Of a stretch of 64,000 nt of DNA, positions 14,075 to 47,473 are shown piece by piece; positions within the stretch are counted from its first letter, which is position 1, and every line of letters begins with the position of its first letter. Both the position numbers and the translations under genes were made by a program. Where the stretch lies: assembly GCF_964194025.1 (NCBI RefSeq), contig NC_134482.1, forward strand, positions 29,202,001-29,266,000. Direction: 5' to 3'. The stretch comes from Convolutriloba macropyga (taxonomy: Eukaryota). The notes beneath the pieces were generated by a model. It did no database searches. It saw only the letters and a list, made by a program, of their open reading frames with translations, and was not told where the DNA came from.

Positions 14075-14263
14075 CCCTAGTCGAGAGAGGATGTTAATCT
14101 TGCAAGATCTTGAAAGATTCTTGCAAAAAACTGTTAATCTTGCAAGATCTTGCAAGAGGATGTTAATCTTGCAAGATCTTGCAAGAGGATGTTAATCTTG
14201 CAAGATCTTGCAAGATGCTTTCAAGATTAACATCCTCTTGCAAGATCTTGCAAGATTAACATC
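14075..14263 (+). repeat. Left TIR and subterminal repeats
   Basis: CCCTAGTCGA terminus followed by multiple gatgttaatcttgcaagatcttgcaaga units in both orientations. Confidence 0.9.
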
Positions 14264-14329
14264 GAAAAACCTCCTTTATTGAATCGCTCTATGATGTTGC
14301 CGTTTTTTGACAAGTTTTGTGAACAAAAT

Positions 14330-17300
14330 AGCTTTTAATGACTCTGGCTAGTTTGTTAGGCCCTGACAAACGTCATTTCAAAGCCTCCCGTGACATCCAT
14401 CTGAAATTTTTTATTGTTTTACCTGACTTTTTTTTCAAGAAATACGCTGTTTCTCTGACTCTAAGCGCATAGAACCACCACAACGGTTCTGTACCCACGA
14501 TCTCTAATCATAAGTAGGCAGATGAGTTGAATGACAGGCCTAGATCACGCGAAAAAGTTGATCATGGGTTTTTTGTGGTGATAATATAATGGTTTTTGGT
14601 GATAAACTATGTTTATGGCGAAATTCGTAAATGGTCACTTTTCTTGGGCTTCCGATCCTTTCCAAAACCATTCTATAGCAAAACGGCACTTCTACCGGGG
14701 TTTAAAAAAGCTGGAAAAATGAAATTAGGGTGCAAAATTTGTTTGCCATAAAACATTATTTCTCTCGGGCGTAAACAGAAAATTTCATATTGACATTACA
14801 GGTGATATAGCTGTAAGACAGCAAAATCTTATAAAAAACGCTGTTTGATGGTTTTTTCATTGACATTGCTTCTAACAACTGTGGCTAGTTTGTAAGGCCC
14901 TCACGAACGTTATATCAAAGCCTCCAGTGACATCCATCTGAGCTTTTTCACTGTTTTACCTGACTTTTTTTCAAGAAAAACGCTCTTTCTCTGACTCCAA
15001 GCACATAGAACCACCACAACGGTTCCGTAACCACGATCTCTAATCATAAGTAGTCGGATGAGTTGAATGACAGGCCTAGATCACGCGAAAAAGTTTATCA
15101 TAGGTTTTTTGTGGTGATAATATAATGGTTTTTGGTGATAAACTATGTTTATGGCGAAATTCGTAAATGGTCACTTTTCTTGGGCTTCCGATCCTTTCCA
15201 AAATCATTCTATAGCAAAACGGCACTTCTACTGGGGTTTAAAAAAAGCTGGAAAAATAAAATTGGGGTGCAAAATTTTTTTGCCATAAAACATTTTTTCT
15301 CTCGGGCGTAAACAGAAAATTTCATATTGACATTACCGGTGATATAGCAGTAAGAAAGCAAAATCTTATAAAAAACGCTGTTTGATGGTTTTTTATTAAC
15401 AACGCTTCTAACGACTGTGGCTAGTTTCCTAGGCCCTGATAAACGTCATATAAAAGCCTCCAGTGACATCCATCTGAGCTTTTTTTATTGTTTGACCTGA
15501 CTTTTTTTTCAAGAAAAACGCTCTTTCTCTGACTCCAAGCACATAGAACCACCACAACGGTTCCGTAACCACGATCTCTAATCATAAGTAGTCAGATGAG
15601 TTGAATGACAGGCCTAGATCAGGCGAAAAAGTTGATCATAGGTTTTTTGTGGTGATAATATAATGGTTTTTTTGTTGATAAACTATGTTTATGGCGAAAT
15701 TCGTAAATGGTCACTTTTCTTCGGCTTCCGATCCTTTCCAAAATCATTCTATAGCAAAACGGCACTTCTATTGAGGTTTAAAAAAAGCTGGAAAAATAAA
15801 ATTGGGGTGCAAAATTTTTTTGCCATAAAACATTTTTTCTCGGGCGTAAACAGAAAATTTCATATTGACATTATCTGTGATATAGCAGTAAGAAAGCAAA
15901 ATCTTATAAAAAACGCTGTTTGATGGTTTTTTCATTGACATAGCTTCTAACAACTGTGGCTAGTTTGTAAGGCCCTGACGAACGTTATATCAAAGCCTCC
16001 AGTGACATCCATCTGAGCTTTTTCACTGTTTTACCTGACTTTTTTTTCAAGAAAAACGCTCTTTCTCTGACTCAAAGCACATAGAACCACCACAACGGTT
16101 CCGTAACCACGATCTCTAATCATAAGTAGTCAGATGAGTTGAATGACACGCCTAGATCACGCGAAAAAGTTGATCATAGGTTTTTTGTGGTGATAATATA
16201 ATGGTTTTTGGTGATAAACTATGTTTATGGCGAAATTCGTAAATGGTCACTTTTCTTGGGCTTCCGATCCTTTCCAAAATCATTCTATAGCAAAACGGCA
16301 CTTCTACTGGGGTTTAAAAAAAGCTGGAAAAATAAAATTGGGGTGCAAAATTTTTTTGCCATAAAACATTTTTTCTCTCGGGCGTAAACAGAAAATTTCA
16401 TATTGACATTACCGGTGATATAGCAGTAAGAAAGCAAAATCTTATAAAAAACGCTGTTTGAAGGTTTTTTATTAACAAAGCTTCTAACGACTGTGGCTAG
16501 TTTCCTAGGCCCTGATAAACGTCATATAAAAGCCTCCAGTGACATCCATCTGAGCTTTTTTATTGTTTGACCCGACTTTTTTTTCAAGAAAAACGCTCTT
16601 TCTCTGACTCCAAGCACATAGAACCACCACAACGGTTCCGTAACCACGATCTCTAATCATAAGTAGTCAGATGAGTTGAATGACAGGCCTAGATCAGGCG
16701 AAAAAGTTGATCATAGGTTTTTGTGGTGATAATATAATGGTTTTTGGTGATAAACTATGTTTATGGCGAAATTCGTAAATGGTCACTTTTCTTCGGCTTC
16801 CGATCCTTTCCAAAATCATTCTATAGCAAAACGGCACTTTTATTGAGGTTTAAAAAAAGCTGGAAAAATAAAATTGGGGTGCAAAATTTTTTTGCCATAA
16901 AACATTTTTTCTCGGGCGTAAACAGAAAATTTCATATTGACATTATCTGTGATATAGCAGTAAGAAAGGAAAATCTTATAAAAAACGCTGTTTGATGGTT
17001 TTTTCATTAACAAAGCTTCTAACGACTGTGGCTAGTTTCCTAGGCCCTGATAAACGTAATATCGAAGCCTCCAGTGACATCCATCTGAGCTTTTTTATTG
17101 TTTTACCTGACTTTTTTTCAAGAAAAACGCTCTTTCTCTGACTCCAAGCGCATAGAACCACCACAACGGTTCCGTAACCACGATCTCTAATCATAAGTAG
17201 TCAGATGAGTTGAATGACAGGCCTAGATCACTTGAAAAAGTTGATCATAGGTTTTTTGTGGTGATAATATAATGGTTTTTGGTGATAAACTATGTTTATG

Positions 17301-20300
17301 GCGAAATTCGTAAATGGTCACTTTTCTTGGGCTTCCGATCATTTCCAAAATCATTCTATAGCAAAACGGCACTTCTACTGGGGCTTAAAAAAAGCTGGAA
17401 AAATAAAATTGGGGTGCAAAATTTTTTTGCCAAAAACATTTTTTCTCTCGGGCGTAAACAGAAAATTTCATATTGACATTACAGGTGATATAGCAGTAAG
17501 AAAGCAAAATCTTATAAAAAACGCTGTTTGATGGTTTTTTCCTTAACATAGCTTCTAACGACTGTGGCTAGTTTGTAAGGCCCTGACGAACGTTATATCA
17601 AAGCCTCCAGTGACATCAATCTGAGCTTTTTTACTGTTTTACCTGACTTTTTTTTCAAGAAAAACGCTCTTTCTCTGACTCCAAGCGCATAGAACCACCA
17701 CAACGGTTCCGCAACCACGATCTCTAATCATAAGTAGTCAGATGAGTTGAATGAAAGGCCTGGATCACGCGAAAAAGTTGATCATAGGTTTTTTGTGGTG
17801 ATAATATAATGGTTTTTGGTGATAAACTATGTTTATGGCGAAATTCGTAAATGGTTACTTTTCTTGGGCTTCCGATCCTTTCCAAAACCATTCTATAGCA
17901 AAACGGCACTTCTACCGGGGTTTAAAAAAAGCTGAAAAATAAAATTAGGGTGCAAAATTTTTTTGCCATAAAACATTTTTTCTCTCGGGCGTAAACAGAA
18001 AATTTCATATTGACATTACCGGTGATATAGCAGTAAGAAAGCAAAATCTTATAAAAAACGCTGTTTGATGGTTTTTTCATTAACAACGCTTCTAACGATT
18101 GTGGCTAGTTTCCTAGGCCCTGATAAACGTCATATCAAAGCCTCCAGTGACATCCATCTGAGCTTTTTTATTGTTTGACCTGACTTTTTTTTCAAGAAAA
18201 ACGCTCTTTCTCTGACTCCAAGCGCTTAGAACCACCACAACGGTTCCGTAACCACAATCTCTAATCATAAGTAGTCAGATGAGTTGAATGAAAGGCCTGG
18301 ATCACGCGAAAAAATTGATCATAGGTTTTTTGTGGTGATAATATAATGGTTTTTGGTGATAAACTATGTTTATTGCGAAATTCGTAAATGGTCACTTTTC
18401 TTGGGCTTCCGATCCTTTCCAAAACCATTCTATAGCAAAACGGCACTTCTACCGGGGTTTAAAAAAAGCTGGAAAAATAAAATTAGGGTGCAAAATATTT
18501 TTGCCATAAAACATTTTTTCTCTCGGGCGTAAACAGAAAATTTCATATTGACATTACAGGTGATATAGCAGTAAGAAAGCAAAATCTTATAAAAAACGCT
18601 GTTTGATGGTTTTTTCCTTAACATAGCTTCTAACGACTGTGGCTAGTTTGTAAGGCCCTGACGAACGTTATATCAAAGCCTCCAGTGACATCAATCTGAG
18701 CTTTTTTACTGTTTTACCTGACTTTTTTTTCAAGAAAAACGCTCTTTCTCTGACTCCAAGCGCATAGAACCACCACAACGGTTCCGCAACCACGATCTCT
18801 AATCATAAGTAGTCAGATGAGTTGAATGAAAGGCCTGGATCACGCGAAAAAGTTGATCATAGGTTTTTTGTGGTGATAATATAATGGTTTTTGGTGATAA
18901 ACTATGTTTATGGCGAAATTCGTAAATGGTTACTTTTCTTGGGCTTCCGATCCTTTCCAAAACCATTCTATAGCAAAACGGCACTTCTACCGGGGTTTAA
19001 AAAAAGCTGAAAAATAAAATTAGGGTGCAAAATTTTTTTGCCATAAAACATTTTTTCTCTCGGGCGTAAACAGAAAATTTCATATTGACATTACCGGTGA
19101 TATAGCAGTAAGAAAGCAAAATCTTATAAAAAACGCTGTTTGATGGTTTTTTCATTAACAACGCTTCTAACGATTGTGGCTAGTTTCCTAGGCCCTGATA
19201 AACGTCATATCAAAGCCTCCAGTGACATCCATCTGAGCTTTTTTATTGTTTGACCTGACTTTTTTTTCAAGAAAAACGCTCTTTCTCTGACTCCAAGCGC
19301 TTAGAACCACCACAACGGTTCCGTAACCACAATCTCTAATCATAAGTAGTCAGATGAGTTGAATGAAAGGCCTGGATCACGCGAAAAAATTGATCATAGG
19401 TTTTTTGTGGTGATAATATAATGGTTTTTGGTGATAAACTATGTTTATTGCGAAATTCGTAAATGGTCACTTTTCTTGGGCTTCCGATCCTTTCCAAAAC
19501 CATTCTATAGCAAAACGGCACTTCTACCGGGGTTTAAAAAAAGCTGGAAAAATAAAATTAGGGTGCAAAATATTTTTGCCATAAAACATTTTTTCTCTCG
19601 GGCGTAAACAGAAAATTTCATATTGACATTACCGGTGATATAGCAGTAAGAAAGCAAAATCTTATAAAAAACGCTGTTTGATGGTTTTTTCATTAACAAC
19701 GCTTCTAACGATTGTGGCTAGTTTCCTAGGCCCTGATAAACGTCATATCAAAGCCTCCAGTGACATCCATCTGAGCTTTTTTATTGTTTGACCTGACTTT
19801 TTTTTCAAGAAAAACGCTCTTTCTCTGACTCCAAGCACATAGAACCACCACAACGGTTCCGTAACCACGATCTCTAATCATAGGTAGTCAGATGAGTTCA
19901 ATGACAGGCCTAGATCACGCGAAAAAGTTGATCATAGGTTTTTTGTGGGGATAATATAATGGTTTTTGGTGATAAACTATGTTTATGGCGAAATTCGTAA
20001 ATGGTCACTTTTCTTCGGCTTCCGATCCTTTCCAAAATCATTCTATATCAAAACGGCACTTCTATTGAGGTTTAAAAAAAGCTGGAAAAATAAAATTGGG
20101 GTTTAAAATTTTTTTGCCAAAAAACCTTTTTTCTCTCGGGCGTAAACAGAAAATTTCATATTGACATTACCGGTGATATAGCAGTAAGAAAGCAAAATCT
20201 TATAAAAAACGCTGTTTGATGGTTTTTTCATTAACAAAGCTTCTAACGACTGTGGCTAGTTTCCTAGGCCCTGATAAACGTCATATCAAAGCCTCCAGTG

Positions 20301-23300
20301 ACATCCATCTGAGCTTTTTTATTGTTTGACCTGACTTTTTTTCAAGAAAAACGCTCTTTCTCTGACTCCAAGTACATAGAACCACCACAACGGTTCCGTA
20401 ACCACGATCTCTAATCATAAATAGTCAGATGAGTTGATTGAAAGGCCTAGATCACGCGAAAAAGTTGATCATAGATTTTTTGTGGTGATAATATAATGGT
20501 TTTTGGTGATAAACTATGTTTATGGCGAAATTCGTAAATGGTCACTTTTCTTGGGCTTCCGATCCTTTCCAAAACCATTCTATAGCAAAACGGCACTTCT
20601 ACCGGGGTTTAAAAAAAGCTTAAAAAATAGAATTAGGGTGCAAAATTTTTTTGCCATAAAACATTTTTTCTCTCGGGCGTAAACAGAAAATTTCATATTG
20701 ACATTACCGGTGATATAGCAGTAAGAAAGCAAATTCTTATAAAAAACGCTGTTTGATGGTTTTTTATTAACAACGCTTCTAACGACTGTGGCTAGTTTCC
20801 TAGGCCCTGATAAACGTCATATAAAAGCCTCCAGTGACATCCATCTGAGCTTTTTTATTGTTTGACCTGACTTTTTTTCAAGAAAAACGCTCTTTCTCTG
20901 ACTCCAAGCACATAGAACCACCACAACGGTTCCGTAACCACGATCTCTAATCATAAGTAGTCAGATGAGTTGAATGACAGGCCTAGATCAGGCGAAAAAG
21001 TTGATCATAGGTTTTTTGTGGTGATAATATAATGGTTTTTGGTGATAAACTATTTTTATGGCGAAATTCGTAAATGGTCACTTTTCTTGGGCTTCCGATC
21101 CTTTCCAAAATCATTCTATAGCAAAACGGCACTTCTACTGGGGTTTAAAAAAAGCTGGAAAAATAAAATTGGGGTGCAAAATTTTTTTGCCATAAAACAC
21201 TTTTTCTCTCGGGCGTAAACAGAAAATTTCATATTGACATTACCGGTGATATAGCAGTAAGAAAGCAAAATCTTATAAAAAACGCTGTTTGATGGTTTTT
21301 TCATTAACAAAGCTTCTAACGACTGTGGCTAGTTTCCTAGGCCCTTATAAACGTCATATCAAAGCCTCCAGTGACATCCATCTGAGCTTTTTTATTGTTT
21401 GACCTGACTTTTTTTTCAAGAAAAACGCTCTTTCTCTGACTCCAAGCTCATAGAACCACCACAACGGTTCCGTAACCACGATCTCTAATCATAGGTAGTC
21501 AGATGAGTTGAATGACAGGCCTAGATCACGCGAAAAAGTTGATCATAGGTTTTTTGCGGTGATAATATAATGGTTTTTGGTGATAAACTATGTTTATGGC
21601 GAAATTCGTAAATGGTCACTTTTCTTGGGCTTCCGATCCTTTCCAAAACCATTCTATAGCAAAACGGCACTTCTACCGGGGTTTAAAAAAGCTGGAAAAA
21701 TAAAATTAGGGTGCAAAATTTTTTTGCCATAAAACATTTTTTCTCTCGGGCGTAAACAGAAAATTTCATATTGACATTACCGGTGATATAGCAGTAAGAA
21801 AGCAAAATCTTATAAAAAACGCTGTTTGATGGTTTTTTATTAACAACGCTTCTAACGACTGTGGCTAGTTTCCTAGGCCCTGATAAACGTCATATAAAAG
21901 CCTCCAGTGACATCCATCTGAGCTTTTTTATTGTTTGACCTGACTTTTTTTTCAAGAAAAACGCTCTTTCTCTGACTCCAAGCACATAGAACCACCACAA
22001 CGGTTCCGTAACCACGATCTCTAATCATAAGTAGTCAGATGAGTTGAATGACAGGCCTAGATCAGGCGAAAAAGTTGATCATAGGTTTTTTGTGGTGATA
22101 ATATAATGGTTTTTGGTGATAAACTATGTTTATGGCGAAATTCGCAATTGGTCACTTTTCTTGGGCTTCCGATCCTTTCCAAAATCATTCTATAGCAAAA
22201 CGGCACTTCTACTGAAGATAACAGAAAACTGGAATAATAAAATTGGTGTGCAAAATTTTTTGCCATAAAACATTTTTTCTCTCTGGCCTAAACAAGAAAT
22301 TTCATATTGACCTTACCGGTGATATAGCAGTAAGAAAACAAAATCTTATAAAAAACGTTGTATGATGATTTTTTTATTAATACAGCTTTTGATGACTGTG
22401 GCTAGTTTGATAGGCCCTGATAAACGTCATATTGAAGCCTCCAGTGACATCCATCTGAGATTTTTTATTGTTTTAACTGATTTTTTTTCAAGAAAAACGC
22501 TGTTTCTCTGACTCCAAGCACGTAGAACCACCACAACGGTTCCGTAACCACGATCTTTATTCAAAAGTAGCCAGATGAGTTGAATGAAAGGCCTAGATCA
22601 AGTGAAAAAGTTGATCATAGTTTTTATGTGGTGATAATATAACGGTTTTTGGTGATATACTATGTTTATGGCGGAATTCGTAATTGTTCACCTTTCTTGG
22701 GCTTCCGATCCTTTCCAAAATGACTCTATAGCCAAACGGCACTTCTACGGGGGTTTAAAAAAAATCTGGAATAATAAAATTGGAGTGCAATTTTTTTGCC
22801 ATAAAACATTTTTTCTCTCGGGCCTAAACACAAAATTTCATGTTGACCTTACCGGTGATGTAGCAGTAAGAAAACAAAATCTGATAAAAAACGTTGCTTC
22901 ATGGATTTTTTTAATATTACGGCATTCAATGACTGTGGCTAGTTTGTTAGGCCCTGATAAACGTCATATCAGGGGCCTCCAGTGACATCAATCTGAGCTT
23001 TTTTTTATTGTTGTATCTGATTTTTTTTCAAGAAAAACGCTGTTTCTCTGACTCCAAGCACATAGAACTACCACAACGGTTCCGTAACCACGATCTCTAT
23101 TCATAAGCAGTCAGATGAGTTGAAAAACAGGCCTAGATTGCGCGAAAAAGTTGACCATAGTTTTTATGTGGTGATAATATAACGGTTTCTGGTGATATAC
23201 AATGTTTATGGCGAAATTCGCAATTGGTCACTTTTCTTGGGCTTCCGATCCTTTCCAAAATCATTCTATAGCAAAACGGCACTTCTACTGAGGATAACAG

Positions 23301-25970
23301 AAAACTGGAATAATAAAATTGGTGTGCAAAATTTTTTGCCATAAAACATTTTTTCTCTCTGGCCTAAACAAGAAATTTCATATTGACCTTACCGGTGATA
23401 TAGCAGTAAGAAAACAAAATCTTATAAAAAACGTTGTATGATGATTTTTTTTATTAAAACAGCTTTTGATGACGGTGGCTAGTTTGATAGGCCCTGATAA
23501 ACGACATATTGAAGCCTCCAGTGACATCCATCTGAACTTTTTTATTGTTTTAACTGATTTTTTTTCAAGAAAAACGCTGTTTCTCTGACTCCAAGCACGT
23601 AGAACCACCACAACGGTTCCGTAACCACGATCTTTTTTCAAAAGTAGCCAGATGAGTTGAATGAAAGGCCTAGATCAAGCGAAAAAGTTGATCATAGTTT
23701 TTATGTGGTGATAATATAACGGTTTTTGGTGATATACTATGTTTATGGCGGAATTCGTAATTGTTCACCTTTCTTGGGCTTCCGATCCTTTCCAAAATGA
23801 CTCTATAGCCAAACCGCACTTCTACGGGGGTTTAAAAAAAAGCTGGAATAATAAAATTGGAGTGCAATTTTTTTGCCATAAAACATTTTTTCTCTCGGGC
23901 CTAAACACAAAATTTCATGTTGACCTTACCGGTGATATAGCAGTAAGAAAACAAAATCTGATAAAAAAACGTTGCTTCATGGATTTTTTTATTATTACGG
24001 CTTTCAATGACTGTGGCTAGTTTGTTAGGCACTGATAAACGTCATATCAGGGGCCTCCAGTGACATCAATCTGAGCTTTTTTTTATTGTTGTATCTGATT
24101 TTTTTTTCAAGAAAAACGCTGTTTCTCTGACTCCAAGCACATAGAACTACCACAACGGTTCCGTAACCACGATCTCTATTCATAAGCAGTCAGATGAGTT
24201 GAAAAACAGGCCTAGATTGCGCGAAAAAGTTGACCATAGTTTTTATGTGGTGATAATATAACGGTTTCTGGTGATATACTATGTTTATGGCGAAATTCGC
24301 AATTGGTCACTTTTCTTGGGCTTCCGATCCTTTCCAAAATCATTCTATAGCAAAACGGCACTTCTACTGAGGATAACAGAAAACTGGAATAATAAAATTG
24401 GTGTGCAAAATTTTTTGCCATAAAACATTTTTTCTCTCTGGCCTAAACAAGAAATTTCATATTGACCTTACCGGTGATATAGCAGTAAGAAAACAAAATC
24501 TTATAAAAAACGTTGTATGATGATTTTTTTATTAATACAGCTTTTGATGACTGTGGCTAGTTTGATAGGCCCTGATAAACGTCATATTGAAGCCTCCAGT
24601 GAGTGACATCCATCTGAGCTTTTTTATTGTTTTAACTGATTTTTTTTCAAGAAAAACGCTGTTTCTCTGACTCCAAGCACGTAGAACCACCACAACGGTT
24701 CCGTAACCACGATCTTTATTCAAAAGTAGCCAGATGAGTTGAATGAAAGGCCTAGATCAAGCGAAAAAGTTGATCATAGTTTTTATGTGGTGATAATATA
24801 ACGGTTTTTGGTGATATACTATGTTTATGGCGGAATTCGTAATTGTTCACCTTTCTTGGGCTTCCGATCCTTTCCAAAATGACTCTATAGCCAAACGGCA
24901 CTTCTACGGGGGTTTAAAAAAAAGCTGGAACAATAAAATTGGAGTGCATTTTTTTTGCCATAAAACATTTTTTCTCTCGGGCCTAAACACAAAATTTCAT
25001 GTTGACCTTACCGGTGATATAGCAGTAAGAAAACAAAATCTGATAAAAAACGTTGCTTCATGGATTTTTTTATTATTACGGCTTTCAATGACTGTGGCTA
25101 GTTTGTTAGGCCCTGATAAACGTCATATCAGGGGCCTCCAATGACATCAATCTGAGCTTTTTTTTATTGTTGTATCTGATTTTTTTTCAAGAAAAACGCT
25201 GTTTCTCTGACTCCAAGCACATAGAACTACCACAACGGTTCCGTAACCACGATCTCTATTCATAAGCAGTCAGATGAGTTGAAAAACAGGCCTAGATTGC
25301 GCGAAAGTTGACCATAGGCTTTTTATGGTGATAATATAACGTTTTTTAGTGATCTACTAAGTTTTTGGCGAAGTTCGTAAATAGTCACATTTCTTGAGCT
25401 TCCAGTCCTTTCCAAAATCATTCTATAGCAAAACTGCACTTCTACTGAGGCTAACAAAAGCTGGAAAACTGAAATGGGGTCCCAAAAATAATTTTTGGCC
25501 TTAAAACAATCATTGTCTCGGGCCTAAACGGAAAATTTCATTTTGACTGTACCGGTGATAAGAATACAAAATATTATTAAAAAAATGTTGTTTGATGGTT
25601 TTCTCACACAAAATAGCTTTCAATGACTGTGGTTAGGTTGTTAGGATCTGATAAACGTCATATCAAAGCCTCCAGTAATATCCATCCAAGCTTTTATTTT
25701 GTTTTGTCTGACTTTTTCCAAGAAAATCACTGCTTCTATGACTCGAAGCGCATGGAATCACAACAAGGGTCCAGTTATTTTAATCGCTAAATATACATCA
25801 ATATCGGATATATATCAGGGGTCTATTAGACCAAAAAAGGTGACCATAAGTTCTTTGTGGCGACAACAGAACGCTTTTTGATGGTATAATATGTACAAGG
25901 CGAAATTCGAAATTGTAACTCTTCTTTAACCTAGGAACCATTCCAAACTCATTCTATGGCAAATCGGCAC
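14330..25970. repeat. AT-rich satellite array, ~537-bp monomer, about 22 copies
   Basis: The marker gaaccaccacaacgg recurs every ~537 bp from ~14471 to ~25223, plus a degenerate copy near 25754. Repeated shadow ORFs confirm the period. Confidence 0.95.
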
Positions 25971-28264: not shown

Positions 28265-28739
28265 GAGTAATTTTCGAAAATTTCGATGAAATTGAGTGCT
28301 TTTGAAAAGTACTCCAAAAGTACTGAACGCAATTGAGCATGTGTGGTATCGTTGAACTCAGCAAGAGCTCTTCTTTGTTTGAGCCACCGGTGAAGTGCGT
28401 AGTATTGGTCGCTGAGAAAATATTAACCCCTGATTTCAGGCAAAATGCTTAATTTTGACCCTCTTTTTCACCGCACGAATGGTACCTTTATATAAGCGGT
28501 TTTTGTAGATGTACTATAGCAATTTACAACCCTCGTCATCTCCACAGTTGAGCCCCATAAGTTTTCCTATGCGTTTTCTGGAGTTGTGTGGGTGAAATTT
28601 GACGATGTACGTCGCGAACCAGGTCAAATTTAGGCTATGTTACAAAACGGTATTTTTGAAATATCTCATTGTTGACTGAACCAATTTCTGTTCTGTTTGA
28701 AGATTATGACAGGTTATATATTGCTGTTGAAGGCCCAGG

Positions 28740-31009: not shown

Positions 31010-31037
31010 AAAATGCGCTCTGTCAGGGACGCGTTTT
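31010..31037 (+). promoter_or_regulatory. Conserved-loop hairpin, copy 1
   Basis: aaaatgcg-CTCTGTCAGGGA-cgcgtttt (one G.T pair). Confidence 0.65.
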
Positions 31038-31850: not shown

Positions 31851-31880
31851 CTTCATGTGCTCTGACAGGGACACATGAAG
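31851..31880 (+). promoter_or_regulatory. Conserved-loop hairpin, copy 2
   Basis: cttcatgtg-CTCTGACAGGGA-cacatgaag (perfect 9-bp stem). Confidence 0.65.
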
Positions 31881-33127: not shown

Positions 33128-33944
33128 ATGCCTGGTCAAAACCAACCCAGGTTTCGCCCGAACAGAAACGCCGTCAATGTTCTTAAGAGAATTGAAGAGG
33201 CACTAAGACAATTAGACATGGCTCAGGTGGATGCAGTCAACTTTTTGCTTTGGGCTGCAAAATCATTGAGAAAAATTGTAAGCTTTTTTTTAAATTGCTT
33301 TCAGTCAAAGTTTGTGGCATTTATATTAGCCCTGTTGGTCTTTTTGTGCTTTTTTTCCTGGACTGATGTTTTGCATGAACGATCGAACATTATGAGCAAT
33401 TGATAAAGCAATCCCCGTGTGCACCCCTCTACTGGATATCCGGCCACGAACCCTTTCGCTTGAAACCTGTCGCTTGAGAGCAATTAAGCTGACCGTAGTT
33501 GGTTACGTTCAAAACTAAAATTATTCTTTTTTGTCATAGAACGTTAAACAGAGTCAAAAACAACGGAAAAACCCGAATAATCGGCTGATGTATAAAAATC
33601 GAAATCTCTTGGCCTACAGTGGTGCAAGCGATGACTACTCAGGGTACGGCAAGTTTTTAACGAGGTGCATCCTATCAAAAAAGGAACGAAAAATAACTTG
33701 CTGGTTTGCACAACGATCGGTCAGGGACGGACGCGTACCAGCCTCTGAGGAAGATGAAAGTTATTTTCGAGGTTTAAATTTTTCGAACTTCAGTTTTTTT
33801 CGGAGTTTTTAATTTTTTTTACTTACGACATAAATTTTAGAAGCAGTCAGACGGTTCTGTGGGGACAGCCTCTATGCCCTGAGACGTGTAAAGGATGCTG
33901 CCAATGCGTACGGCATTCATGAAAGAAAGCAACGGTTCGGCTAA
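33128..33944 (+). CDS. Gene B: three-exon, 161-aa BEN-like paralogue (exons 33128-33277, 33540-33771, 33841-33944)
   Basis: Two GT-AG introns (phase 0 and phase 1) give an uninterrupted ORF. The product aligns with 32056-32598 (LMY...NLL...G, ERK..C, R.PA.EE....FR.A, N..G). AATAAA lies at 34012. Confidence 0.75.
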
Positions 33945-36851: not shown

Positions 36852-37194
36852 GTTTATCAATAAAAGTGGTCAATGTTTTGGCTCGCTATCCTATTCCAGA
36901 CTTAACAATAACTTGGGAGAATGCGTAATTCAATTAGGCGACGGTCGTTTCTTTCGTGTTAGTACGTACTGTTCAATTTCTGATGTGTCATATGCTGTTG
37001 GTAGACCTGCTACTAGTGCCCGCAATTTAAATTTGACTTGTACTTCTGATAATTTTGGCCTAATATACGAACTTTTTGGTTTAGGGTCTATGGAAATGGT
37101 TCCCACTTGTAACTTAAAGCACAAGACTGTAGTTTTTGTTGAGCAAAATTTTCTCATCGTGAGTGTCATAAGAGAAGGATTCGAGCATAATTGA
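36847..37194 (+). CDS. Frameshifted C-terminus of the SET-transposase
   Basis: Removing one T from the T9 run at 36839-36847 joins ...ISSFF to SRFINKSGQCFGSLSYSR...GFEHN, giving a 990-aa protein. Confidence 0.7.
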   Translation, partial: SRFINKSGQCFGSLSYSRLNNNLGECVIQLGDGRFFRVSTYCSISDVSYAVGRPATSARNLNLTCTSDNFGLIYELFGLGSMEMVPTCNLKHKTVVFVEQNFLIVSVIREGFEHN

Positions 37195-37307: not shown

Positions 37308-37871
37308 ATGTATTCAATCGAAGCGTGTTTTAGTCCATCAATCGTTATAGTCGGGGACAGCAACCTGGTGAGGATTCAAAACGAACTTGAAATTGATGTT
37401 GTTCTCCGGCCCTATAAAATCACTCTTCATTGCAGACCCAGCTTCCGAGCTGCCTTTTTGAACGGCGAAGATGTAGTGTTTTGTGCCAATTTCACCCATT
37501 GCATACTTCTATTAGGAAACAATGACATCTCACAACACCCTAACAAACCTTGGCTGACCCCTGAAACTCCTTTAAAAACTGCTGCTAGGCTGTGTGGCTT
37601 CGCAAAGAGACTACAAGAAAATTCTGTCGAAGTTAAAGTTGTCGGTCTTTTAAATCGGCCAGATACGGAATACGAGCCCATACAACAGACTAATATTTTT
37701 TTTCAAAACTTTATGCAAACTGATTACGTTGGTCCTCGTTATGTGAGGCCCATTCATTTTCTTAAAGAAAACATTCCATATGATTTGGCGCATTTGAATG
37801 AGGACGGCAAAAAGCGAGTGCTCGCTCTGTTCCTCAGTATATTGACCACCAGATTTGAAGTTCACCCCTAG
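37308..37871 (+). CDS. SGNH/GDSL hydrolase-fold protein (187 aa)
   Basis: Block I VIVGDS, block III LLLGNND and block V DLAHLN, in the correct order and spacing. Confidence 0.85.
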   Translation: MYSIEACFSPSIVIVGDSNLVRIQNELEIDVVLRPYKITLHCRPSFRAAFLNGEDVVFCANFTHCILLLGNNDISQHPNKPWLTPETPLKTAARLCGFAKRLQENSVEVKVVGLLNRPDTEYEPIQQTNIFFQNFMQTDYVGPRYVRPIHFLKENIPYDLAHLNEDGKKRVLALFLSILTTRFEVHP

Positions 37872-38711: not shown

Positions 38712-38829
38712 ACTTTATAAAAGAAATTGACTCTTGCTGCTTTTGGTTTTCATGTTTATGTACACGAATTGGTGAAGGAAATTCTATGAGGTGGAGACCG
38801 ACCACCCTAAGTATACCAAAAAGTTGATG

Positions 38830-41800
38830 TCTTCTGCATGGACGTCGCGTCGCGTCTTCGGTTTGGGCGATAAGCTGTGTCGTTCCTCCTTTTCCTGTTT
38901 TCGGGTACTCTTAGTGCCCTCCGTTTTTTGCGCGATGCTTAGGCTTTGCTTTGTTTTGGGCACGTGCTTTGCCCCTGTTTGCTTGCGCCACGTAGGATTA
39001 AGGTTTTGCGTTGCTCTTTGTACCCCCTCCCATCTAAGGTTTTTGGCGCAGGCCTTAAGTGTTGCTTTGCCGGGCTTTGCTTTTGCCCATAGTGTGCTAA
39101 GGTTAGGGTGGGTGGTCTCTCCTTTGCCCGCGCCGTTTTAGGTGCCAGGTTTTTTGCGCTTCCGTTTCGCTTTTCCCTCCCCACTTGGGTTCCGGCGCGG
39201 CCTTTAGGTGTTTCTGGCTGGGCTTTGCTTTGCCCTGGTGTGCTCTGGCTCAGTTTGGGGGGTACCCTTGTGCTGAGGCGCTTGGGATTTCTTTGCTGTT
39301 CTGTGTTGTTCAGTTTTCTCTTTTTCTGCAGGATTCGGTGACACCCGAGGATAAGGAGACAACATGAGGAGGGCCTGGTGAGGTCCAGTTTGGGGGTTGG
39401 CTGGTGGGCGCGAGGGACTCTTCACTTGTGTTTGGTAAGTTCTGCCGCAGCTTTTTTTTGCGCGCTGCTTAGGCTTTGCTTTGTGGGCACGTGCTTTGCC
39501 CTTTCTGCCTGCGCCACTTAGGATTAAGGTTTTGCGTTGCTCTTTGTACCCCCTCCCATCTAGGCTTTTTGGCGCAGGCGTTAGGTGTTGCTTTGCCGGG
39601 CTTTGCTTTTGCCCATAGTGTGCTTAGGTTAGGGTGGGTGGTCTCTCCAGTGCCCGCGCCGATTTAGGAGCTAGGTTTTTCGCGCTTCCGTTTCGCTTTT
39701 CCCTCCCCACTTAGGTTTCGGCGCGGGCTTTAGGTGTTTCTTGCTGCGCTTTGCTTTGCCCTGGTGTGCTTTGGCTCGGTTTGGGGGGGGGGGTACCCTT
39801 GCGCTTATGCGCTTGGGATTTCTTTGCTGTTCTGTGTTCAGTTTTCTCTTTTTCTGCAGGATTCGGTGACACCCGAGGACGAGGAGACAACACGAGGAGG
39901 TCCTGGTGAGGTCCAGTTTGGGGGCTGGCTGGTGGGCACGAGGGACTCTTCACTTCTGTTTGGTAAGTTCTGCCGCAGCTTTTTTTGCGCGCTGCTTAGG
40001 CTTTGCTTTGTGGGCACGTGCTTTGCCCTTTTTGCCTGCGCCACTTAGGATTAAGGTTTTGCGTTGCTCTTTGTACCCCCTCCCATCTAGGCTTTTTGGC
40101 GCAGGCCTTAGGTGTTGCTTTGCTTTTGCCCATAGGGTGCTTAGGTTAGGGTGGGAGGTCTCTCTTTTGCCCGCGCCGATTTAGGAGCTAGGTTTTTCGC
40201 GCTTCCGTTTCGCTTTTCCCTCCCCACTTAGGTTTCGGCGCGGGCTTTAGGTGTTTCTTGCTGGGCTTTGCTTTGCCCTGGTGTGCTTTGGCTGAGTTTG
40301 GGTGGGGGGTACCCTTGCGCTTATGCGCTTGGGATTTCTTTGCTGTTCTGTAATGTTCAGTTTTCTCTTTTTCTGCAGGATTCGGTGACACCCGAGGACG
40401 AGGAGACGACACCCGAGGAGCCCTGGGTGGTGGAGACGACCTTTGGTGTTGGTGGTGGAGTCATCACCCCTTCTGCATGGACTTCGCGTCTTCGGTTTGG
40501 TCGGTAAGCTGTGTCGTTCCCCCCTTTTCCTGTTTTCGGGCACTCTTAGTGCTCCCCGCTTTTTGCGCGCTGCTTAGGCTTTGCTTTGTTTTGGGCACGT
40601 GCTTTGCCCTTTTTGCCTGCGCCACTTAGGATTAAGGTTTTGCGTTGCTCTTTGTACCCCCTCCCATCTAGGCTTTTTGGCGCAGGCCTTAGGTGTTGCT
40701 TTGCCGGGCTTTGCTTTTGCCCATAGGGTGCTTAGGTTAGGGTGGGAGGTCTCTCCTTTGCCCGCGCCGATTTAGGAGCTAGGTTTTTCGCGCTTCCGTT
40801 TCGCTTTTCGCTCCCCACTTAGGTTTCGGCGCGGGCTTTAGGTGTTTCTTGCTGGGCTTTGCTTTGCCCTGGTGTGCTTTGGCTCGGTTTGGGGGGTGGG
40901 GGGGTACCCTTGCGCTTAGGCGCTTGGAATTTCTTTGCTGTTCTGTGTTGTTCAGTTTTCTCTTTTTCTGCAGGATTCGGTGACACCCGAGGACGAGGAG
41001 ACGACACCCGAGGAGCCCTGGGTGGTGGAGACGACCTTTGGTGTTGGTGGTGGAGTCGTCACCCCTTCTGCATGGACTTCGCGTCTTCGGTTTGGTCGGT
41101 AAGCTGTGTCGTTCCCCCCTTTTCCTGTTTTCGGTCACTCTTAGTGCTCCCCGCTTTTTGCGCGCTGCTTAGGCTTTGCTTTGTTTTGGGCACGTGCTTT
41201 GCCCTTTTTGCCTGCGCCACTTAGGATTAAGGTTTTGCGTTGCTCTTTGTACCCCCTCCCATCTAGGCTTTTTGGCGCAGGCCTTAGGTGTTGCTTTGCC
41301 GGGCTTTGCTTTTGCCCATAGGGTGCTTAGGTTAGGGTGGGAGGTCTCTCCTTTGCCCGCGCCGATTTAGGAGCTAGGTTTTTCGCGCTTCCGTTTCGCT
41401 TTTCCCTCCCCACTTAGGTTTCGGCGCGGGCTTTAGGTGTTTCTTGCTGGGCTTTGCTTTGCCCTGGTGTGCTTTGGCTCGGTTTGGGGGGTGGGGGGGT
41501 ACCCTTGCGCTTAGGCGCTGGGAATTTCTTTGCTGTTCTGTGTTGTTCAGTTTTCTCTTTTTCTGCAGGATTCGGTGACACCCGAGGACGAGGAGACGAC
41601 ACCCGAGGAGCCCTGGGTGGTGGAGACAACCTTTGGTGTTGGTGGTGGAGTTGTCACCCCTTCTGCATGGACTTCGCGTCTTCGGTTTGGTCGGTAAGCT
41701 ATGCCGTTCCCCCCCCTTTTCCTGTTTTCGGGCACTCTTAGTGCTCTCCGCTTTTTGCGCGCTGCTTAGGCTTTGCTTTGTTTTGGGCACGTGCTTTGCC

Positions 41801-44800
41801 CTTTTTGCCTGCGCCACTTAGGATTAAGGTTTTGCGTTGCTCCTTGTACCCTCTCCCATCTAGGCTTTTTGGCGCAGGCCTTAGGTGTTGCTTTGCCGGG
41901 CTTTGCTTTTGCCCATAGTGTGCTAAGTTTAGGGTAGGTGGTCTCTCCTTTGCCCGCGCCGATTTAGGAGCTAGGTTTTTTGCGCTTCCGTTTCGCTTTT
42001 CCCTCCCCCCTTAGGTTTCGGCGCGGGCTTTAGCTGTTTCTTGCTGGGCTTTGCTTTGCCCTGGTGTGCTTTGGCTCGGTTTGGGGGGTACCCTTGCGCT
42101 TAGGCGCTTGGGATTTCTTTGCTGTTCTGTGTTGTTCAGTTTTCTCTTTTTCTGCAGGATTCGGTGACACCCGAGGACGAGGAGACGGCACCCGAGGAGC
42201 CCTGGGTGGTGGAGACGACCTTTGGTGTTGGTGGTGGAGTCGTCACCCCTTCTGCATGGACTTCGCGTCTTCGGTTTGGTCGGTAAGCTGTGTCGTTCCC
42301 CCCCCCTTTCCTGTTTTCGGGCACTCTTAGTGCTCCCCGCTTTTTGCGCGCTGCTTAGGCTTTGCTTTGTTTTGGGCACGTGCTTTGCCCTTTTTGCCTG
42401 CGCCACTTAGGATTAAGGTTTTGCGTTGCTCTTTGTACCCCCTCCCATCTAGGCTTTTTGGCGCAGGCCTTAAGTGTTGCTTTGCCGGGCTTTGCTTTTG
42501 CCCATAGTGTGCTTAGGTTAGGGTGGGTGGTCTCTCCTGTGACCGCGCCGATTTAGGAGCTAGGTTTTTCGCGCTTCCGTTTCGCTTTTCCCTCCCCACT
42601 TAGGTTTCGGCGCGGGCTTTAGGTGTTTCTTGCTGGGCTCTGCTGCTTTGCCCTGGTGTGCTTTGGCTCGCTTTGGGGGGGGGGGTTACCCTTGCGCTTA
42701 GGCGCTTGGGATTTCTTTGCTGTTCTGTGTTGTTCAGTTTTCTCTTTTTCTGCAGGATTCGGTGACACCCGAGGACAAGGAGACGACACCCGAGGAGCCC
42801 TGGGTGGTGGAGACGACCTTTGGTGTTGGTGGTGGAGACGTCACCCCTTCTGCATGGACTTCGCGTCTTCGGTTTGGTCGGTAAGCTGTGTCGTTCCCCC
42901 CCTTTTCCTGTTTTCGGGCACTCTTAGTGCTCCCCGCTTTTTTTGCGCGCTGCTTAGGCTTTGCTTTGTTTTGGGCACGTGCTTTGCCCTTTTTGCCTGC
43001 GCCACTTAGGATTAAGGTTTTGCGTTGCTCCTTGTACCCCCTCCCATCTAGGCTTTTTGGCGCAGGCCTTAGGTGTTGCTTTGCCGGGCTTTGCTTTTGC
43101 CCATAGTGTGCTAAGTTTAGGGTAGGTGGTCTCTCCTTTGCCCGCGCCGATTTAGGAGCTAGGTTTTTTGCGCTTCCGTTTCGCTTTTCCCTCCCCCCTT
43201 AGGTTTCGGCGCGGGCTTTAGGTGTTTCTTGCTGGGCTTTGCTTTGCCCTGGTGTGCTTTGGCTCGGTTTGGGGGGGTACCCTTGCGCTTAGGCGATTGG
43301 GATTTCTTTGCTGTTCTGTGTTGTTCAGTTTTCTCTTTTTCTGCAGGATTCGGTGACACCCGAGGACAAGGAGACGACACCCGAGGAGCCCTGGGTGGTG
43401 GAGACGACCTTTGGTGTTGGTGGTGGAGTCGTCACCCCTTCTGCATGGACTTCGCGTCTTCGGTTTGGTCGGTAAGCTGTGTCGTTCCCCCCCCCCTTTT
43501 CCTGTTTTCGGGCACTCTTAGTGCTCCCCGCTTTTTGCGCGCTGCTTAGGCTTTGCTTTGTTTTGGGCACGTGCTTTGCCCTTTTTGCCTGCGCCACTTA
43601 GGATTAAGGTTTTGCGTTGCTCTTTGTACCCCCTCCCATCTAGGCTTTTTGGCGCAGGCCTTAAGTGTTGCTTTGCCGGGCTTTGCTTTTGCCCATAGTG
43701 TGCTTAGGTTAGGGTGGGTGGTCTCTCCTGTGCCCGCGCCGATTTAGGAGCTAGGTTTTTCGCGCTTCCGTTTCGCTTTTCCCTCCCCACTTAGGTTTCG
43801 GCGCGGGCTTTAGGTGTTTCTTGCTGGGCTTTGCTTTGCCCTGGTGTGCTTTGGCTCGGTTTGGGGGGGGGGGTACCCTTGCGCTTAGGCGCTTGGGATT
43901 TCTTTGCTGTTCTGTGTTGTTCAGTTTTTTCTTTTTCTGCATGATTCGGTGACACCCGAGGACAAGGAGACGACACCCGAGGAGCTCTGGGTGGTGGAGA
44001 CGACCTTTGGTGTTGGTGGTGGAGTCGTCACCCCTTCTGCATGGACTTCGCGTCTTCGGTTTGGTCGGTAAGCTGTGTCGTTCCCCCCCCCCTTTTCCTG
44101 TTTTCGGGCACTCTTAGTGCTCCCCGCTTTTTTTGCGCGCTGCTTAGGCTTTGCTTTGTTTTGGGCACGTGCTTTGCCCTTTTTGCCTGCGCCACTTAGG
44201 ATTAAGGTTTTGCGTTGCTCTTTGTACCCCCTCCCATCTAGGCTTTTTGGCGCAGGCCTCAGGTGTTGCTTTGCCGGGCTTTGCTTTTGCCCATAGTGTG
44301 CTTAGGTTAGGGTGGGTGGTCTCTCCTGTGCCCGCGCCGATTTAGGAGCTAGGTTTTTCGCGCTTCCGTTTCGCTTTTCCCTCCCCACTTAGGTTTCGGC
44401 GCGGGATTTAGGTGTTTCTTGCTCGGCTTTGTTTTGCCCTGGTGTGCTTTGGCTCGGTTTAGGGGGGGGGTACCCTTGCGCTTAGGCGCTTGGGACTTCT
44501 TTGCTGTTCTGTGTTGTTCAGTTTTCTCTTTTTCTGCAGGATTCGGTGGTACTCGAGGACGAGGAGACGACACCCGAGGAGCCCTGGGTGGTGGAGACGA
44601 CCTTTGGTGTTGGTGGTGGAGTCGTCACCCCTTCTGCATGGACTTCGCGTCTTCGGTTTGGTCGGTATGCTGTGTCGTCCCCCCCCCCCCTTTTCCTGTT
44701 TTCGAACACTCTTAGTGCTCCCCGCTTATTGCGCGCTGCTTAGGCTTTGCTTTGTTTTGGGCACGTGCTTTGCCCTTTTTGCCTGTGCCACTTAGGATTA

Positions 44801-46950
44801 AGGTTTTGCGTTGCTCTTTGTACCCCCTCCCATCTAGGCTTTTTGGCGCAGGCCTTAAGTGTTGCTTTGCCGGGCTTTGCTTTTGCCCATAGTGTGCTTA
44901 GGTTAGGGTGGGTGGTCTCTCCTGTGCCCGCGCCGATTTAGGAGCTAGGTTTTTCGCGCTTCCGTTTCGCTTTTCCCTACCCACTTAGGTTTCGGCGCGG
45001 GCTTTAGGTGTTTCTTGCTGGGCTTTGCTTTGCCCTGGTGTGCTTTGGCTCGGTTTGGGGGGGTACCCTTGCGCTTAGGCGCTTGGGATTTCTTTGCTGT
45101 TCTGTGTTGTTCAGTTTTCTCTTTTTCTGCATGATTCGGTGACACCCGAGGACAAGGAGACGACACCCGAGGAGCCCTGGGTGGTGGAGACGACCTTTGG
45201 TGTTGGTGGTGGAGTCGTCACCCCTTCTGCATGGACTTCGCGTCTTCGGTTTGGTCGGTAAGCTGTGTCGTTCCCCCCTTTTCCTGTTTTCGGGCACTCT
45301 TAGTGCTCCCCGCTTTTTTTGCGCGCTGCTTAGGCTTTGCTTTGTTTTGGGCACGTGCTTTGCCCTTTTTGCCTGCGCCACTTAGGATTAAGGTTTTGCG
45401 TTGCTCTTTGTACCCCCTCCCATCTAGGCTTTTCGGCGCAGGCCTCAGGTGTTGCTTTGCGGGCTTTGCTTTTGCCCATAGTGTGCTTAGGTTAGGGTGG
45501 GTGGTCTCTCCTGTGCCCGCGCCGATTTAGGAGCTAGGTTTTTCGCGCTTCCGTTTCACTTTTCCCTCCCCACTTTGGTTTCGGCGCGGGATTTAGGTGT
45601 TTCTTGCTCGGCTTTGTTTTGCCCTGGTGTGCTTTGGCTCGGTTTAGGGGGGGGGGTACCCTTGCGCTTAGGCGCTTGGGACTTCTTTGCTGTTCTGTGT
45701 TGTTCAGTTTTCTCTTTTTCTGCAGGATTCGGTGACACCCGAGGACAAGGAGACGACACCCGAGGAGCCCTGGGTGGTGGAGACGACCTTTGGTGTTGGT
45801 GGTGGAGTCGTCACCCCTTCTGCATGGACTTCGCGTCTTCGGTTTGGTCGGTAAGCTGTGTCGTCCCCCCCCCCTTTTCCTGTTTTCGGGCACTCTTAGT
45901 GCTCCCCGCTTATTGCGCGCTGCTTAGGCTTTGCTTTGTTTTGGGCACGTGCTTTGCCCTTTTTGCCTGCGCCACTTAGGATTAAGGTTTTTCGTTGCTC
46001 TTTGTACCCCCTCCCATCTAGGCTTTTTGGCGCAGGCCTTAGGTGTTGCTTTGCCGGGCTTTGCTTTTGCCCATAGTGTGCTTAGGTTAGGGTGGGTGGT
46101 CTCTCCTGTGCCCGCGCCGATTTAGGAGCTAGGTTTTTCGCGCTTCCGTTTCGCTTTTCCCTCCCCACTTAGGTTTCGGCGCGGGCTTTAGGTGTTTCTT
46201 GCTGGGCTTTGCTTTGCCCTGGTGTGCTTTGGCTCGGTTTGGGGGGGGGGGGGTACCCTTGCGCTTAGGCGCTTGGGATTTCTTTGCTGTTCTGTGTTGT
46301 TCAGTTTTCTCTTTTTCTGCAGGATTCGGTGACACCCGAGGACAAGGAGACGACACCCGAGGAGCCCTGGGTGGTGGAGACGACCTTTGGTGTTGGTGGA
46401 GGAGTCGTCACCCCTTCTGCATGGACTTCGCGTCTTCGGTTTGGTCGTTAAGCTGTGTCGTTCCCCCCTTTTCCTGTTTTCGGGCACTCTTAGTGCTCCC
46501 CGCTTTTTGCGCGCTGCTTAGGCTTTGCTTTGTTTTGGGCACGTGCTTTGCCCTTTTTGCCTGCGCCACTTAGGATTAAGGTTTTGCGTTGCTCTTTGTA
46601 CCCCCTCCCATCTAGGCTTTTTGGCGCAGGCCTTAGGTGTTGCTTTGCCGGGCTTTGCTTTTGCCCATAGTGTGCATAGGTTAGGGTGGGGTGGGTGGTC
46701 TCTCCTGTGCCCGCGCCGATTTAGGAGCTAGGTTTTTCGCGCTTCCGTTTCGCTTTTCCCTCCCCACTTAGGTTTCGGCGCGGGCTTTAGGTGTTTCTTG
46801 CTGGGCTTTGCTTTGCCCTGGTGTGCTTTGGCTCGGTTTGGGGGGGGGGTACCCTTGCGCTTAGGCGCTTGGGATTTCCTTGCTGTTCTGTGTTGTTCAC
46901 TTTTTTTTTCTGCAGGATTCGGTGACACCCGAGGACGAGGAGACGACACC
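38830..46950. repeat. GC-rich, strand-skewed satellite array, ~595-bp monomer (first units ~527 bp), about 14 copies
   Basis: The marker gcacgtgctttgccc recurs 14 times from ~38960 to ~46539. The plus strand is G/T-rich and A-poor, with many TTAGG motifs. Confidence 0.95.
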
Positions 46951-47309
46951 CTACGACGAGACCACAGTCACTTGAAAATGAAAAGAAACAAAATTGTTTG
47001 AAAAAAAAACTCAAAGAAAAATCAAAAAAGAAGAAAAGAAGATCAGCGAAGGGAGTCGTCTGCCTGTTGTTTTCTTGTGCTAGATTGGTTTTTCGATGTG
47101 ATGTATTTATTTTTTTTGTATTTATTTTTTTTGTTCTTTTAAATTCAAATTTCATCTGCTTTCCTGAGTTTCTTCTCATAAGACTTAGGTCTAGGATAGG
47201 AACGTTTTTTTGTTACTAAAATAGGATAGGATTGGTTTTCCGCGGCTTTTTTAGGCGCTTTTTTTGTTTAGGATAGGTTAAGGAGAGAAAAAAAATCTGC
47301 AAAATATGC

Positions 47310-47473
47310 TGTTAATCTTGCAAGATCTTGCAAGAGGATGTTAATCTTGCAAGAAAATCTTGCAAAAAAATGTTAATCTTGCAAGATCTTGCAAGAAAAT
47401 CTTGCAAGATTATGCATAATCTTGCAAGATCTTGCAAGATTCTTGCAAGATTAACATCCTAAATCGACTAGGG
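47310..47473 (-). repeat. Right subterminal repeats and TIR
   Basis: Multiple tcttgcaaga units ending gattaacatcctaaatcgactaggg, the inverse of the left end. Confidence 0.9.

Follow-up and report, generated by a model that had tools for sequence, protein, structure and literature searches.

Can two long tandem arrays and the genes that lie between them be parts of one mobile element, and would such an element have any use for the repeats it carries? The question is raised by a 64,000-nucleotide stretch of the genome of Convolutriloba macropyga (RefSeq assembly GCF_964194025.1, contig NC_134482.1, positions 29,202,001 to 29,266,000), here called the window, whose own numbering is used for all coordinates unless a contig is named. 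In an earlier note on this DNA, the interval 14075-47473 was tentatively interpreted as a single transposon that may move satellite DNA together with proteins able to bind it and to set its chromatin state. The analysis presented here partly supports that interpretation. With high confidence, the interval as a whole is best explained as a single complete, mildly decayed copy of a transposon family that is young, multi-copy and part of the CMC superfamily (Mirage group). It carries five genes, one of which joins a SET domain to the transposase, as well as two arrays to which we refer as satellite A and satellite B, these being simply names for the tandem arrays seen inside the element.

The limits of the element are marked by its ends. 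The exact 10-mer CCCTAGTCGA occurs only twice in the whole window, at 14075 on the + strand and at 47464-47473 on the - strand, hence in opposite orientations. The left terminal inverted repeat (TIR; 14075-14107, + strand) consists of CCCTAGTCGA, three mismatched bases and then GGATGTTAATCTTGCAAGA. The repeat is imperfect, 30 of the 33 terminal bases of the left end being matched when the right end is reverse-complemented (the left end reads CCCTAGTCGAGAGAGGATGTTAATCTTGCAAG from 14075 and the right end CTTGCAAGATTAACATCCTAAATCGACTAGGG up to 47473). Next to the left terminus lies a subterminal cluster (14088-14262) in which the 24-bp motif GTTAATCTTGCAAGATCTTGCAAGA is present four times in direct and once in inverted orientation, while at the other side a motif cluster built around the palindrome ATTATGCATAAT and the right TIR, ending in TCGACTAGGG, together occupy 47308-47473. 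When up to three mismatches are allowed, the 24-bp motif TTAATCTTGCAAGATCTTGCAAGA has 16 matches in the window, where none would be expected by chance, and all 16 are confined to 14094-14259 and 47312-47443. The claim that matching TIRs and subterminal repeats enclose this interval is therefore well founded. Within the window's family, three left ends and two right ends agree down to the terminal base, beyond which all similarity is lost.

Other loci carry the same ends, cassette and arrays between different flanks, which bears out the proposal that a single transposon contains both arrays. At least four further copies, 96-97% identical to the window, are present on other contigs of the ENA assembly ERZ25071359; in every one the parts follow the same order, the flanks are unrelated and the arrays differ in copy number. 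One of them (L006, ctg22494 1387-19488) is a complete element of 18.1 kb with identical termini, around eight satellite A units, three to four satellite B units and unrelated flanks. Another one (L007, ctg36907) presents the left terminus, as in the window, at another site, followed by seven satellite A units (97.3% identity over 15.8 kb). The remaining two display the internal order of the window. In L014 (ctg19233) the arrays extend past the retrieved stretch, and L015 (ctg35691) encodes an intact SET-transposase of 990 amino acids (12131-15103) together with uninterrupted open reading frames (ORFs) for the accessory genes gA (214 amino acids) and g3 (168) and for an SGNH hydrolase (181), so that it represents a candidate autonomous element. 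Between copies, the proportion of synonymous differences (pS) amounts to 0.02-0.03 and the ratio of nonsynonymous to synonymous proportions (pN/pS) to 0.55-0.77, values that indicate that the family is young and that part of its divergence arose under selection. As far as can be judged from the assembled sequences, these loci show whole elements, arrays included, sitting at different genomic sites, and the family appears to be of the cut-and-paste type and recently active.

The same architecture reaches beyond this family. A sister family is represented by a 26.4-kb element on ctg36208 (L003, L001 and L004 merged), whose transposase is 58% identical to that of the window. Window base 14075 is exactly where the two elements begin to align (92% over 161 bp); they have nearly identical subterminal motifs and right-end palindromes, and the right terminus of the sister element reads ...CCGACTAGGG. 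The genes of the sister element follow the order gA (present twice), g3, g4, SET-transposase (985 amino acids, intact) and SGNH hydrolase, and a further right end of this family has been found with a different flank (L005). More distantly, the L002 family (41%) retains the five-gene order, with a right terminus of the form ...GACTAGGG and TTTGCAAA subterminal repeats. In addition, an identical SET-transposase of 1008 amino acids, 43% identical to that of the window, stands in the five-gene order on contigs from three metagenome assemblies, ERZ28655150 (Tara Oceans), ERZ27289422 and ERZ16600325 (L011, L012 and L013, respectively), all of which end about where the arrays would start. JGI metagenome scans detected neither the right-end palindrome nor the Tara-type transposase.

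Within the window itself, ends of the CCCTAGT type are also seen outside the element. Two right ends of this type (TCTCAACTAGGG) lie at 8328-8339 and 9060-9071, not far from an 87-bp tandem repeat (8806-8968). A left end is located at 63531 (CCCTAGTTTGCAAAAAATCTTGG...); it has its own AGATCTTGG-type subterminal repeats and runs off the window (63531-64000). This suggests that the genome may house a broader set of families sharing this terminal hexamer.

The assignment of the element to a superfamily depends on its transposase. The SET-transposase gene (34221-37194, + strand) encodes a SUV4-20-like SET domain (around residues 90-210) located N-terminal to a Mirage-type DDE domain. In the window copy the frame is broken by an extra T (nine instead of eight at 36839-36847), which results in ORFs of 876 and 93 amino acids, the former spanning 34221-36851. 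Pfam family DUF1258 has been equated with Mirage, a group within the CMC superfamily (PMC3985635), and the CMC(T) clade has been defined by its DDE residues with C(2)C and H(3-4)H motifs (PMC12730594). The transposase core scores 35.6 bits against DUF1258 (curated cut-off 33.1), and there is also a weak match to Transposase_21 (20.6) that stays under the cut-off of that family. Residues D484, D568, C587 and C590 (the last two within CPHC, 587-590) are invariant in nine proteins down to 25% identity, and CPHC is followed by HTMQH and FESANH both in the window ORF and in the intact L015 copy. Because the DUF1258 match lies above the cut-off and the DDE, C(2)C and H(3)H motifs are present, the sequence places the element in the CMC superfamily, as the earlier note had it, and more precisely in the Mirage branch. 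Of only two named relatives, one is a thrips protein (26% identity).

The SET domain reaches a Pfam score of 34.9 bits (cut-off 22.4). Its ten best matches in the PDB are all human SUV420H1/H2 (E ~2e-12), with the next family at E = 0.004, and these matches sustain the initial identification of the domain as SUV4-20-type; by sequence comparison it is closest to the SUV4-20/KMT5 type. The nearest named cellular protein, obtained with a canonical family member as query, is a fungal (yeast) histone-lysine methyltransferase that is 34% identical.

Several observations weigh against the account of the interval as a full-length copy of a CMC transposon. First, no target-site duplication (TSD) of 2 or 3 bp is found in three complete copies, even when a shift of the boundary by one base is considered. 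The 2-bp flanks are TG/TA in the window copy, GC/GA in L006 and CT/GA in the sister element, and most copies, being only around 3% diverged, should still retain a 2-bp duplication if one had been made; the 2-bp TSDs that the earlier note named as possible support are not seen. Second, no empty site is present among the retrieved loci. Third, all copies terminate in 5'-CCCTAGTCGA...TCGACTAGGG-3' and not in the CA..TG usual for the clade, most members of which have 5'-CA..TG-3' termini (PMC12730594). Fourth, the window locus recurs in ERZ25071359 as ctg33375_46x (12662-64000, 99.99% identity, with no mismatches and five single-base indels, all beyond 44.5 kb), and this contig, which gives the only second view of the array lengths, probably derives from the same reads as the window. 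Finally, the cofactor motif of the SET domain reads NASC in place of the canonical NHSC in most family members, the window copy included, NHSC being kept only in P0011 and P0014. Because the histidine of NHSC is an alanine in most members, the methyltransferase activity of the domain is uncertain.

In addition to the transposase, the element carries a conserved set of accessory genes. Comparison with relatives reveals a cassette of five conserved genes, all on the + strand, in the order gA, g3, g4, SET-transposase and SGNH hydrolase. A four-gene cassette had been described before, and while the strand is borne out, the count is not, since gA had been overlooked. The gA gene (31220-31835, + strand) is characterised by the core motif FYF..D..F......WP...N..K..L..GD, part of a conserved core some 60 residues long for which neither Pfam nor the PDB gave a match. 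The window copy of this gene, which is intact in L015, has six instead of seven A residues near codon 9, giving a one-nucleotide frameshift, and bears a nonsense change (GGA to TGA) at 31458-31460. The g3 gene (32092-32598, + strand) encodes a 168-amino-acid accessory protein and belongs to a cluster of 11 near-identical members on 11 contigs. Its paralogue g4 (33128-33944, + strand) would consist of three exons (33128-33277, 33540-33771 and 33841-33944), separated by predicted GT-AG introns of 262 and 69 nt in a splice structure inferred from the sequence; exon 3 is kept in the sister family.

The products of g3 and g4 had been regarded as BEN-like. Four tests of this identity (Pfam, PDB profile, AlphaFold2 model and Foldseek) returned no support for it. 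None of ten g3 homologues matches the BEN family (PF10523) at E up to 10, and neither do the ORFs of the window and of the sister family. A PDB profile search gave no match, the AlphaFold2 model is all-alpha and of low confidence (predicted local distance difference test score, pLDDT, 47.5), and Foldseek found nothing at E <= 0.001 (best E 1.3). The two proteins are paralogues of each other, and a very remote relationship to BEN is conceivable.

On the other hand, the identity of the last gene of the cassette as an SGNH (GDSL) hydrolase, already proposed from the sequence, is confirmed by its motifs and by its predicted fold. The gene (37308-37871, + strand) is intact in the window and encodes 187 amino acids. 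Conservation of the GDS, Gly, GNND and DxxH blocks extends over 19 homologues, the most distant of them 24% identical: the GDS block is found in every homologue that covers the N terminus, the block II glycine and the histidine of DxxH are nearly invariant, and the GNND block never varies at its Gly, Asn and Asp. The AlphaFold2 model of the protein (pLDDT 93.6, predicted template-modelling score 0.89) retrieves 123 PDB matches at E <= 0.001 in Foldseek, and the top ones, with probability 1.0 and template-modelling scores of ~0.6-0.7, are GDSL/SGNH enzymes or scaffolds designed on them.

The genes also appear to share a signal. A 17-bp motif, YGCTCTGWCAGGGACRC, with the palindromic core CTGWCAG, has six matches on the + strand where 0.07 would be expected, the first one at 31016-31032 and the others at 31858, 32628, 34021, 38334 and 38688. 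One match each stands upstream of gA, g3, g4 and the transposase, and two stand upstream of satellite B. The motif recurs at equivalent sites in the sister family (L001 6498, 8560 and 9788). From this placement we infer that YGCTCTGWCAGGGACRC might act as a shared regulatory element.

What, then, are the arrays? One answer is that they are neutral by-products of unequal exchange, as in plant CACTA elements, that the SET domain is a non-catalytic tether to nucleosomes or histone tails, and that no system of satellite plus writer exists. We consider this explanation a quite possible one, to which somewhat less than even weight can be given, and the two arrays differ in how they bear on it. Satellite A (14328-25971) is a non-coding array with a period of ~537 bp, ~21.7 units and 22 anchor matches, in which self-similarity is higher at an offset of two units (95.4%) than at one unit (92.7%). 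Self-comparison yields the coordinates and character reported in the earlier note for both arrays (~11.6 kb for satellite A, ~8 kb for satellite B). The inner edge of satellite A, plus neighbouring unique DNA, is included in a 1.66-kb segmental tandem duplication (24938-28265), whose halves, 24938-26603 and 26600-28265, are 99.2% identical. Further inwards lies a short 183-bp tandem repeat (28828-29330, 2.8 copies) that is also found in other family copies. Elsewhere, anchor matches of satellite A number five in L006 (a 4.2-kb array of ~8 units), seven in L007 and at least 7-9 in L014 and L015, so that copies with 97% identity differ in the length of this array, which ranges from ~7 to ~22 units; this favours a neutral origin. 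The same holds for its poor conservation. The sister family has an unrelated left array made of four 724-bp units and contains only one copy of a 123-bp segment that forms part of the satellite A unit. Since this segment is single-copy in the sister family and the left array there is unrelated, satellite A is a lineage-specific amplification of a left subterminal segment and, therefore, probably not designed cargo.

Satellite B (38831-46951, + strand) has a period of ~595 bp and 14 units that are 95-97% identical, the first two being shorter (527-530 bp). Its composition is peculiar, with 55% GC, an AT skew of -0.6 and only 9% A on the + strand. Each unit contains ~9 TTAGG, against 1.3 expected (maximum of six in 300 shuffles), all in a single orientation that is the same as that of CTAGG at the right terminus; the unit of the sister family contains five TTAGG and three CTAGG. 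This oriented enrichment argues against a purely neutral array, and so do the presence of the upstream motif of the genes, YGCTCTGWCAGGGACRC, ahead of satellite B and the homology of the array across families whose transposases are only 58% identical. The sister homologue, located at the same place, comprises 14 units of 527 bp with 72-75% identity by blastn (60% overall between consensus units, with blocks above 80%), and it is among the few non-coding parts of both elements that still align. On the neutral side, the short right-side array of the more distant L002 family is very different from satellite B in sequence and composition. The last unit ends in a stub that closes with a stop codon and is followed by an A-rich stretch and TAGGATAGG motifs, forming a right internal region (46952-47307, + strand) whose layout is also kept in the sister family.

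Each satellite B unit also holds a splice-acceptor-like TTTTCTGCAG, behind which come a short acidic ORF stub and then a GTAAG donor. A gene made of repeated exons was considered on this basis and rejected: the stubs of the window and of the sister family measure 125 and 100 nt, respectively, neither length being divisible by 3, the next frame hits an immediate stop, and the indels between the consensus units of the two families are not multiples of 3 either. The ORFs within satellite B reflect its 9% A content.

As for the second half of the neutral explanation, a tethering role of the SET domain is favoured by the replacement of the histidine of NHSC, a residue that contacts S-adenosylmethionine, by alanine in most members. 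Nevertheless, the MLGPxxFxNxSC block, the catalytic tyrosine (Y186, nearly invariant) and the post-SET residues C198, C200 and H206 (invariant) are retained in 13 family members, which speaks against this explanation.

A different concern is that the structure is real, but that the array lengths (11.6 and 8.1 kb) are artefacts of assembly, produced by collapse, expansion or mis-joining. Long near-identical arrays are indeed error-prone to assemble, the sole other version of the locus is the 99.99% identical contig that may share its reads, and two of the three gene lesions of the window copy are changes in homopolymer length of the kind typical of long-read consensus errors. However, the coverage label of that contig (46x) falls within the 38-60x of other contigs, the right array of the sister element also has 14 units, and array identity decays smoothly with distance, showing no abrupt junctions; we regard artefactual lengths as very doubtful. 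That the two termini are independent miniature inverted-repeat transposable elements around ordinary genomic DNA with satellites and a transposase gene is hardly credible, since, even if CCCTAGT-type ends lacking the cassette exist at 8339, 9071 and 63531 and either end cluster alone resembles most of a small palindromic element, L006 (18.1 kb) and the sister element (26.4 kb) contradict it, since each of them, at a site unrelated to the others, has the same contents in the same order enclosed by both ends, and the family ends, as mentioned above, are identical to the last base before complete divergence.

Taking the interval as one copy of a mobile CMC family, a working model of the element can be proposed. 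En/Spm proteins bind their own subterminal repeats, and they serve as a model for the transposase of this element. The DDE transposase, possibly helped by the small accessory proteins, would bind the subterminal clusters and move the whole 18-33 kb unit by cut-and-paste transposition. The tethered SET domain might methylate or bind nucleosomes at the element or at break sites, for instance by marking H4K20; H4K20 marks are read by repair factors. The motif YGCTCTGWCAGGGACRC would co-regulate the five genes plus a transcript through satellite B. Regarding the arrays, unequal exchange within the left subterminal region would have produced satellite A as a by-product, and satellite B, kept between families and full of oriented YTAGG, could be a cis-acting or transcribed part of the element. 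The most ambitious version of the model, close to what had been suggested at first, is a self-contained mobile chromatin module in which SET and accessory proteins would be recruited to ~120 oriented YTAGG sites and to the end clusters to write a histone state (e.g., H4K20 methylation) on the element. We consider this version unlikely.

The element can be compared with several known systems. Like Mirage, which was first described in Caenorhabditis elegans, its transposase core passes the DUF1258 cut-off and shares the DDE, C(2)C and H(3)H motifs. It differs from Mirage in its CCCTAG..CTAGGG termini, in having no detectable 2-bp TSD (2-5 bp in the clade), in the N-terminal SET domain, in the four extra conserved genes, in its size of 18-33 kb and in its internal arrays. 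With plant CACTA/En-Spm elements it has in common short TIRs, many subterminal repeats in two orientations and the weak Transposase_21 match. Those plant elements contain more than one gene, are large in size and have tandem arrays near their ends. Unlike them, the present element has other termini, a different branch and accessory genes, no 3-bp TSD and a SET fusion.

A parallel in protein layout is SETMAR, in which a SET domain precedes a mariner transposase; it is a domesticated, single-copy primate host gene that originated by exon capture. In both, one polypeptide has a SET domain at the N-terminal side of a DDE transposase, whereas SETMAR belongs to Tc1/mariner and has another SET subtype, and the fusion described here is a multi-copy mobile transposase kept across families that are 26-60% identical. 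As regards the hydrolase, LINEs (long interspersed nuclear elements) of the CR1/L2 type are also mobile elements with an SGNH-type esterase, found in ORF1 (ZfL2-1, PDB 4c1b). In that case, however, the esterase is a domain of an RNA-binding retrotransposon protein, whereas here it is a stand-alone gene of 187 amino acids in a DNA transposon, and the profile of the element's hydrolase matches 4c1b only weakly and not significantly (E = 0.65).

Other DNA transposons have been reported to carry enzymes acting on epigenetic marks. SET histone methyltransferase genes are mentioned for HarbingerS and for Phytophthora MuDR transposons (Kojima and Jurka, Repbase Reports 2014, as cited in PMC12730594). 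These are likewise DNA transposons with a SET-domain gene, but, going by the descriptions, they belong to other superfamilies (PIF/Harbinger and Mutator), whereas in the element studied here a SUV4-20/KMT5-type SET domain lies in the same polypeptide as a CMC transposase. TET/JBP dioxygenases accompany fungal DNA transposons of the KDZ, Plavaka, EnSpm, hAT7 and other groups, some of them in the CMCT clade (PMC12730594). They resemble the present element in carrying an enzyme that acts on epigenetic marks beside the transposase and differ in that the enzyme is a DNA-base dioxygenase encoded by a separate gene, while here a histone-methyltransferase-like domain is fused to the transposase; hosts and accessory genes differ as well. 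Neither the fusion of a CMC/Mirage transposase with a SUV4-20-type SET domain nor the five-gene set was found described in the literature, Repbase and Dfam not being covered, which agrees with the earlier statement that this gene combination did not correspond to a described family.

The surroundings of the element consist only of other repeats and a microsatellite. The window, which contains no N, has ~36% GC except between 40 and 46 kb, where GC reaches 55% with an AT skew of -0.6, and no RNA genes were found in it. A 200-bp direct repeat (13547-13746 and 47545-47748, 76% identity) lies ~330 bp to the left and ~70 bp to the right of the element. It was considered as a TSD and rejected, being too diverged and too far from the ends, and it is probably formed by copies of another dispersed repeat and not by insertion. 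On the right side, a degraded long terminal repeat (LTR) retroelement occupies 51248-57815, with 589-bp direct repeats (51248-51836 and 57227-57815, 94.9% identity) and one internal ORF that weakly matches an integrase core (rve). On the left side, tandem repeats of ~1.3 kb unrelated to the element extend over 4353-7506 (e.g., 5023-6109 versus 6415-7505, 87%). In the sister locus, a long (CATA/TACA)n-type microsatellite located ~5 kb beyond the right end (L004 16800-20297) is the source of many false ORF calls.

The family would add to the CMC superfamily a well-defined lineage with unusual termini, no visible target duplication and five co-inherited genes. If the element did work as a chromatin module, satellite DNA, its binding proteins and a histone writer would travel together, and each insertion would seed a repeat block with a preset chromatin state or steer the repair of transposition breaks. 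Apart from that possibility, an element that still moves, or did so until very recently, is found here to have a transposase joined to a histone-methyltransferase-like domain. While SETMAR represents a fusion that arose once by domestication, in this case the fusion would be the working transposase of a diversified family, and the question of what use a histone-modifying domain has for a transposon becomes approachable through an intact natural copy, L015, and defined ends. Finally, the family provides dated and replicated cases in which tandem arrays carried by a mobile element have grown from 7 to 22 units, which bears on how satellites are born and dispersed.

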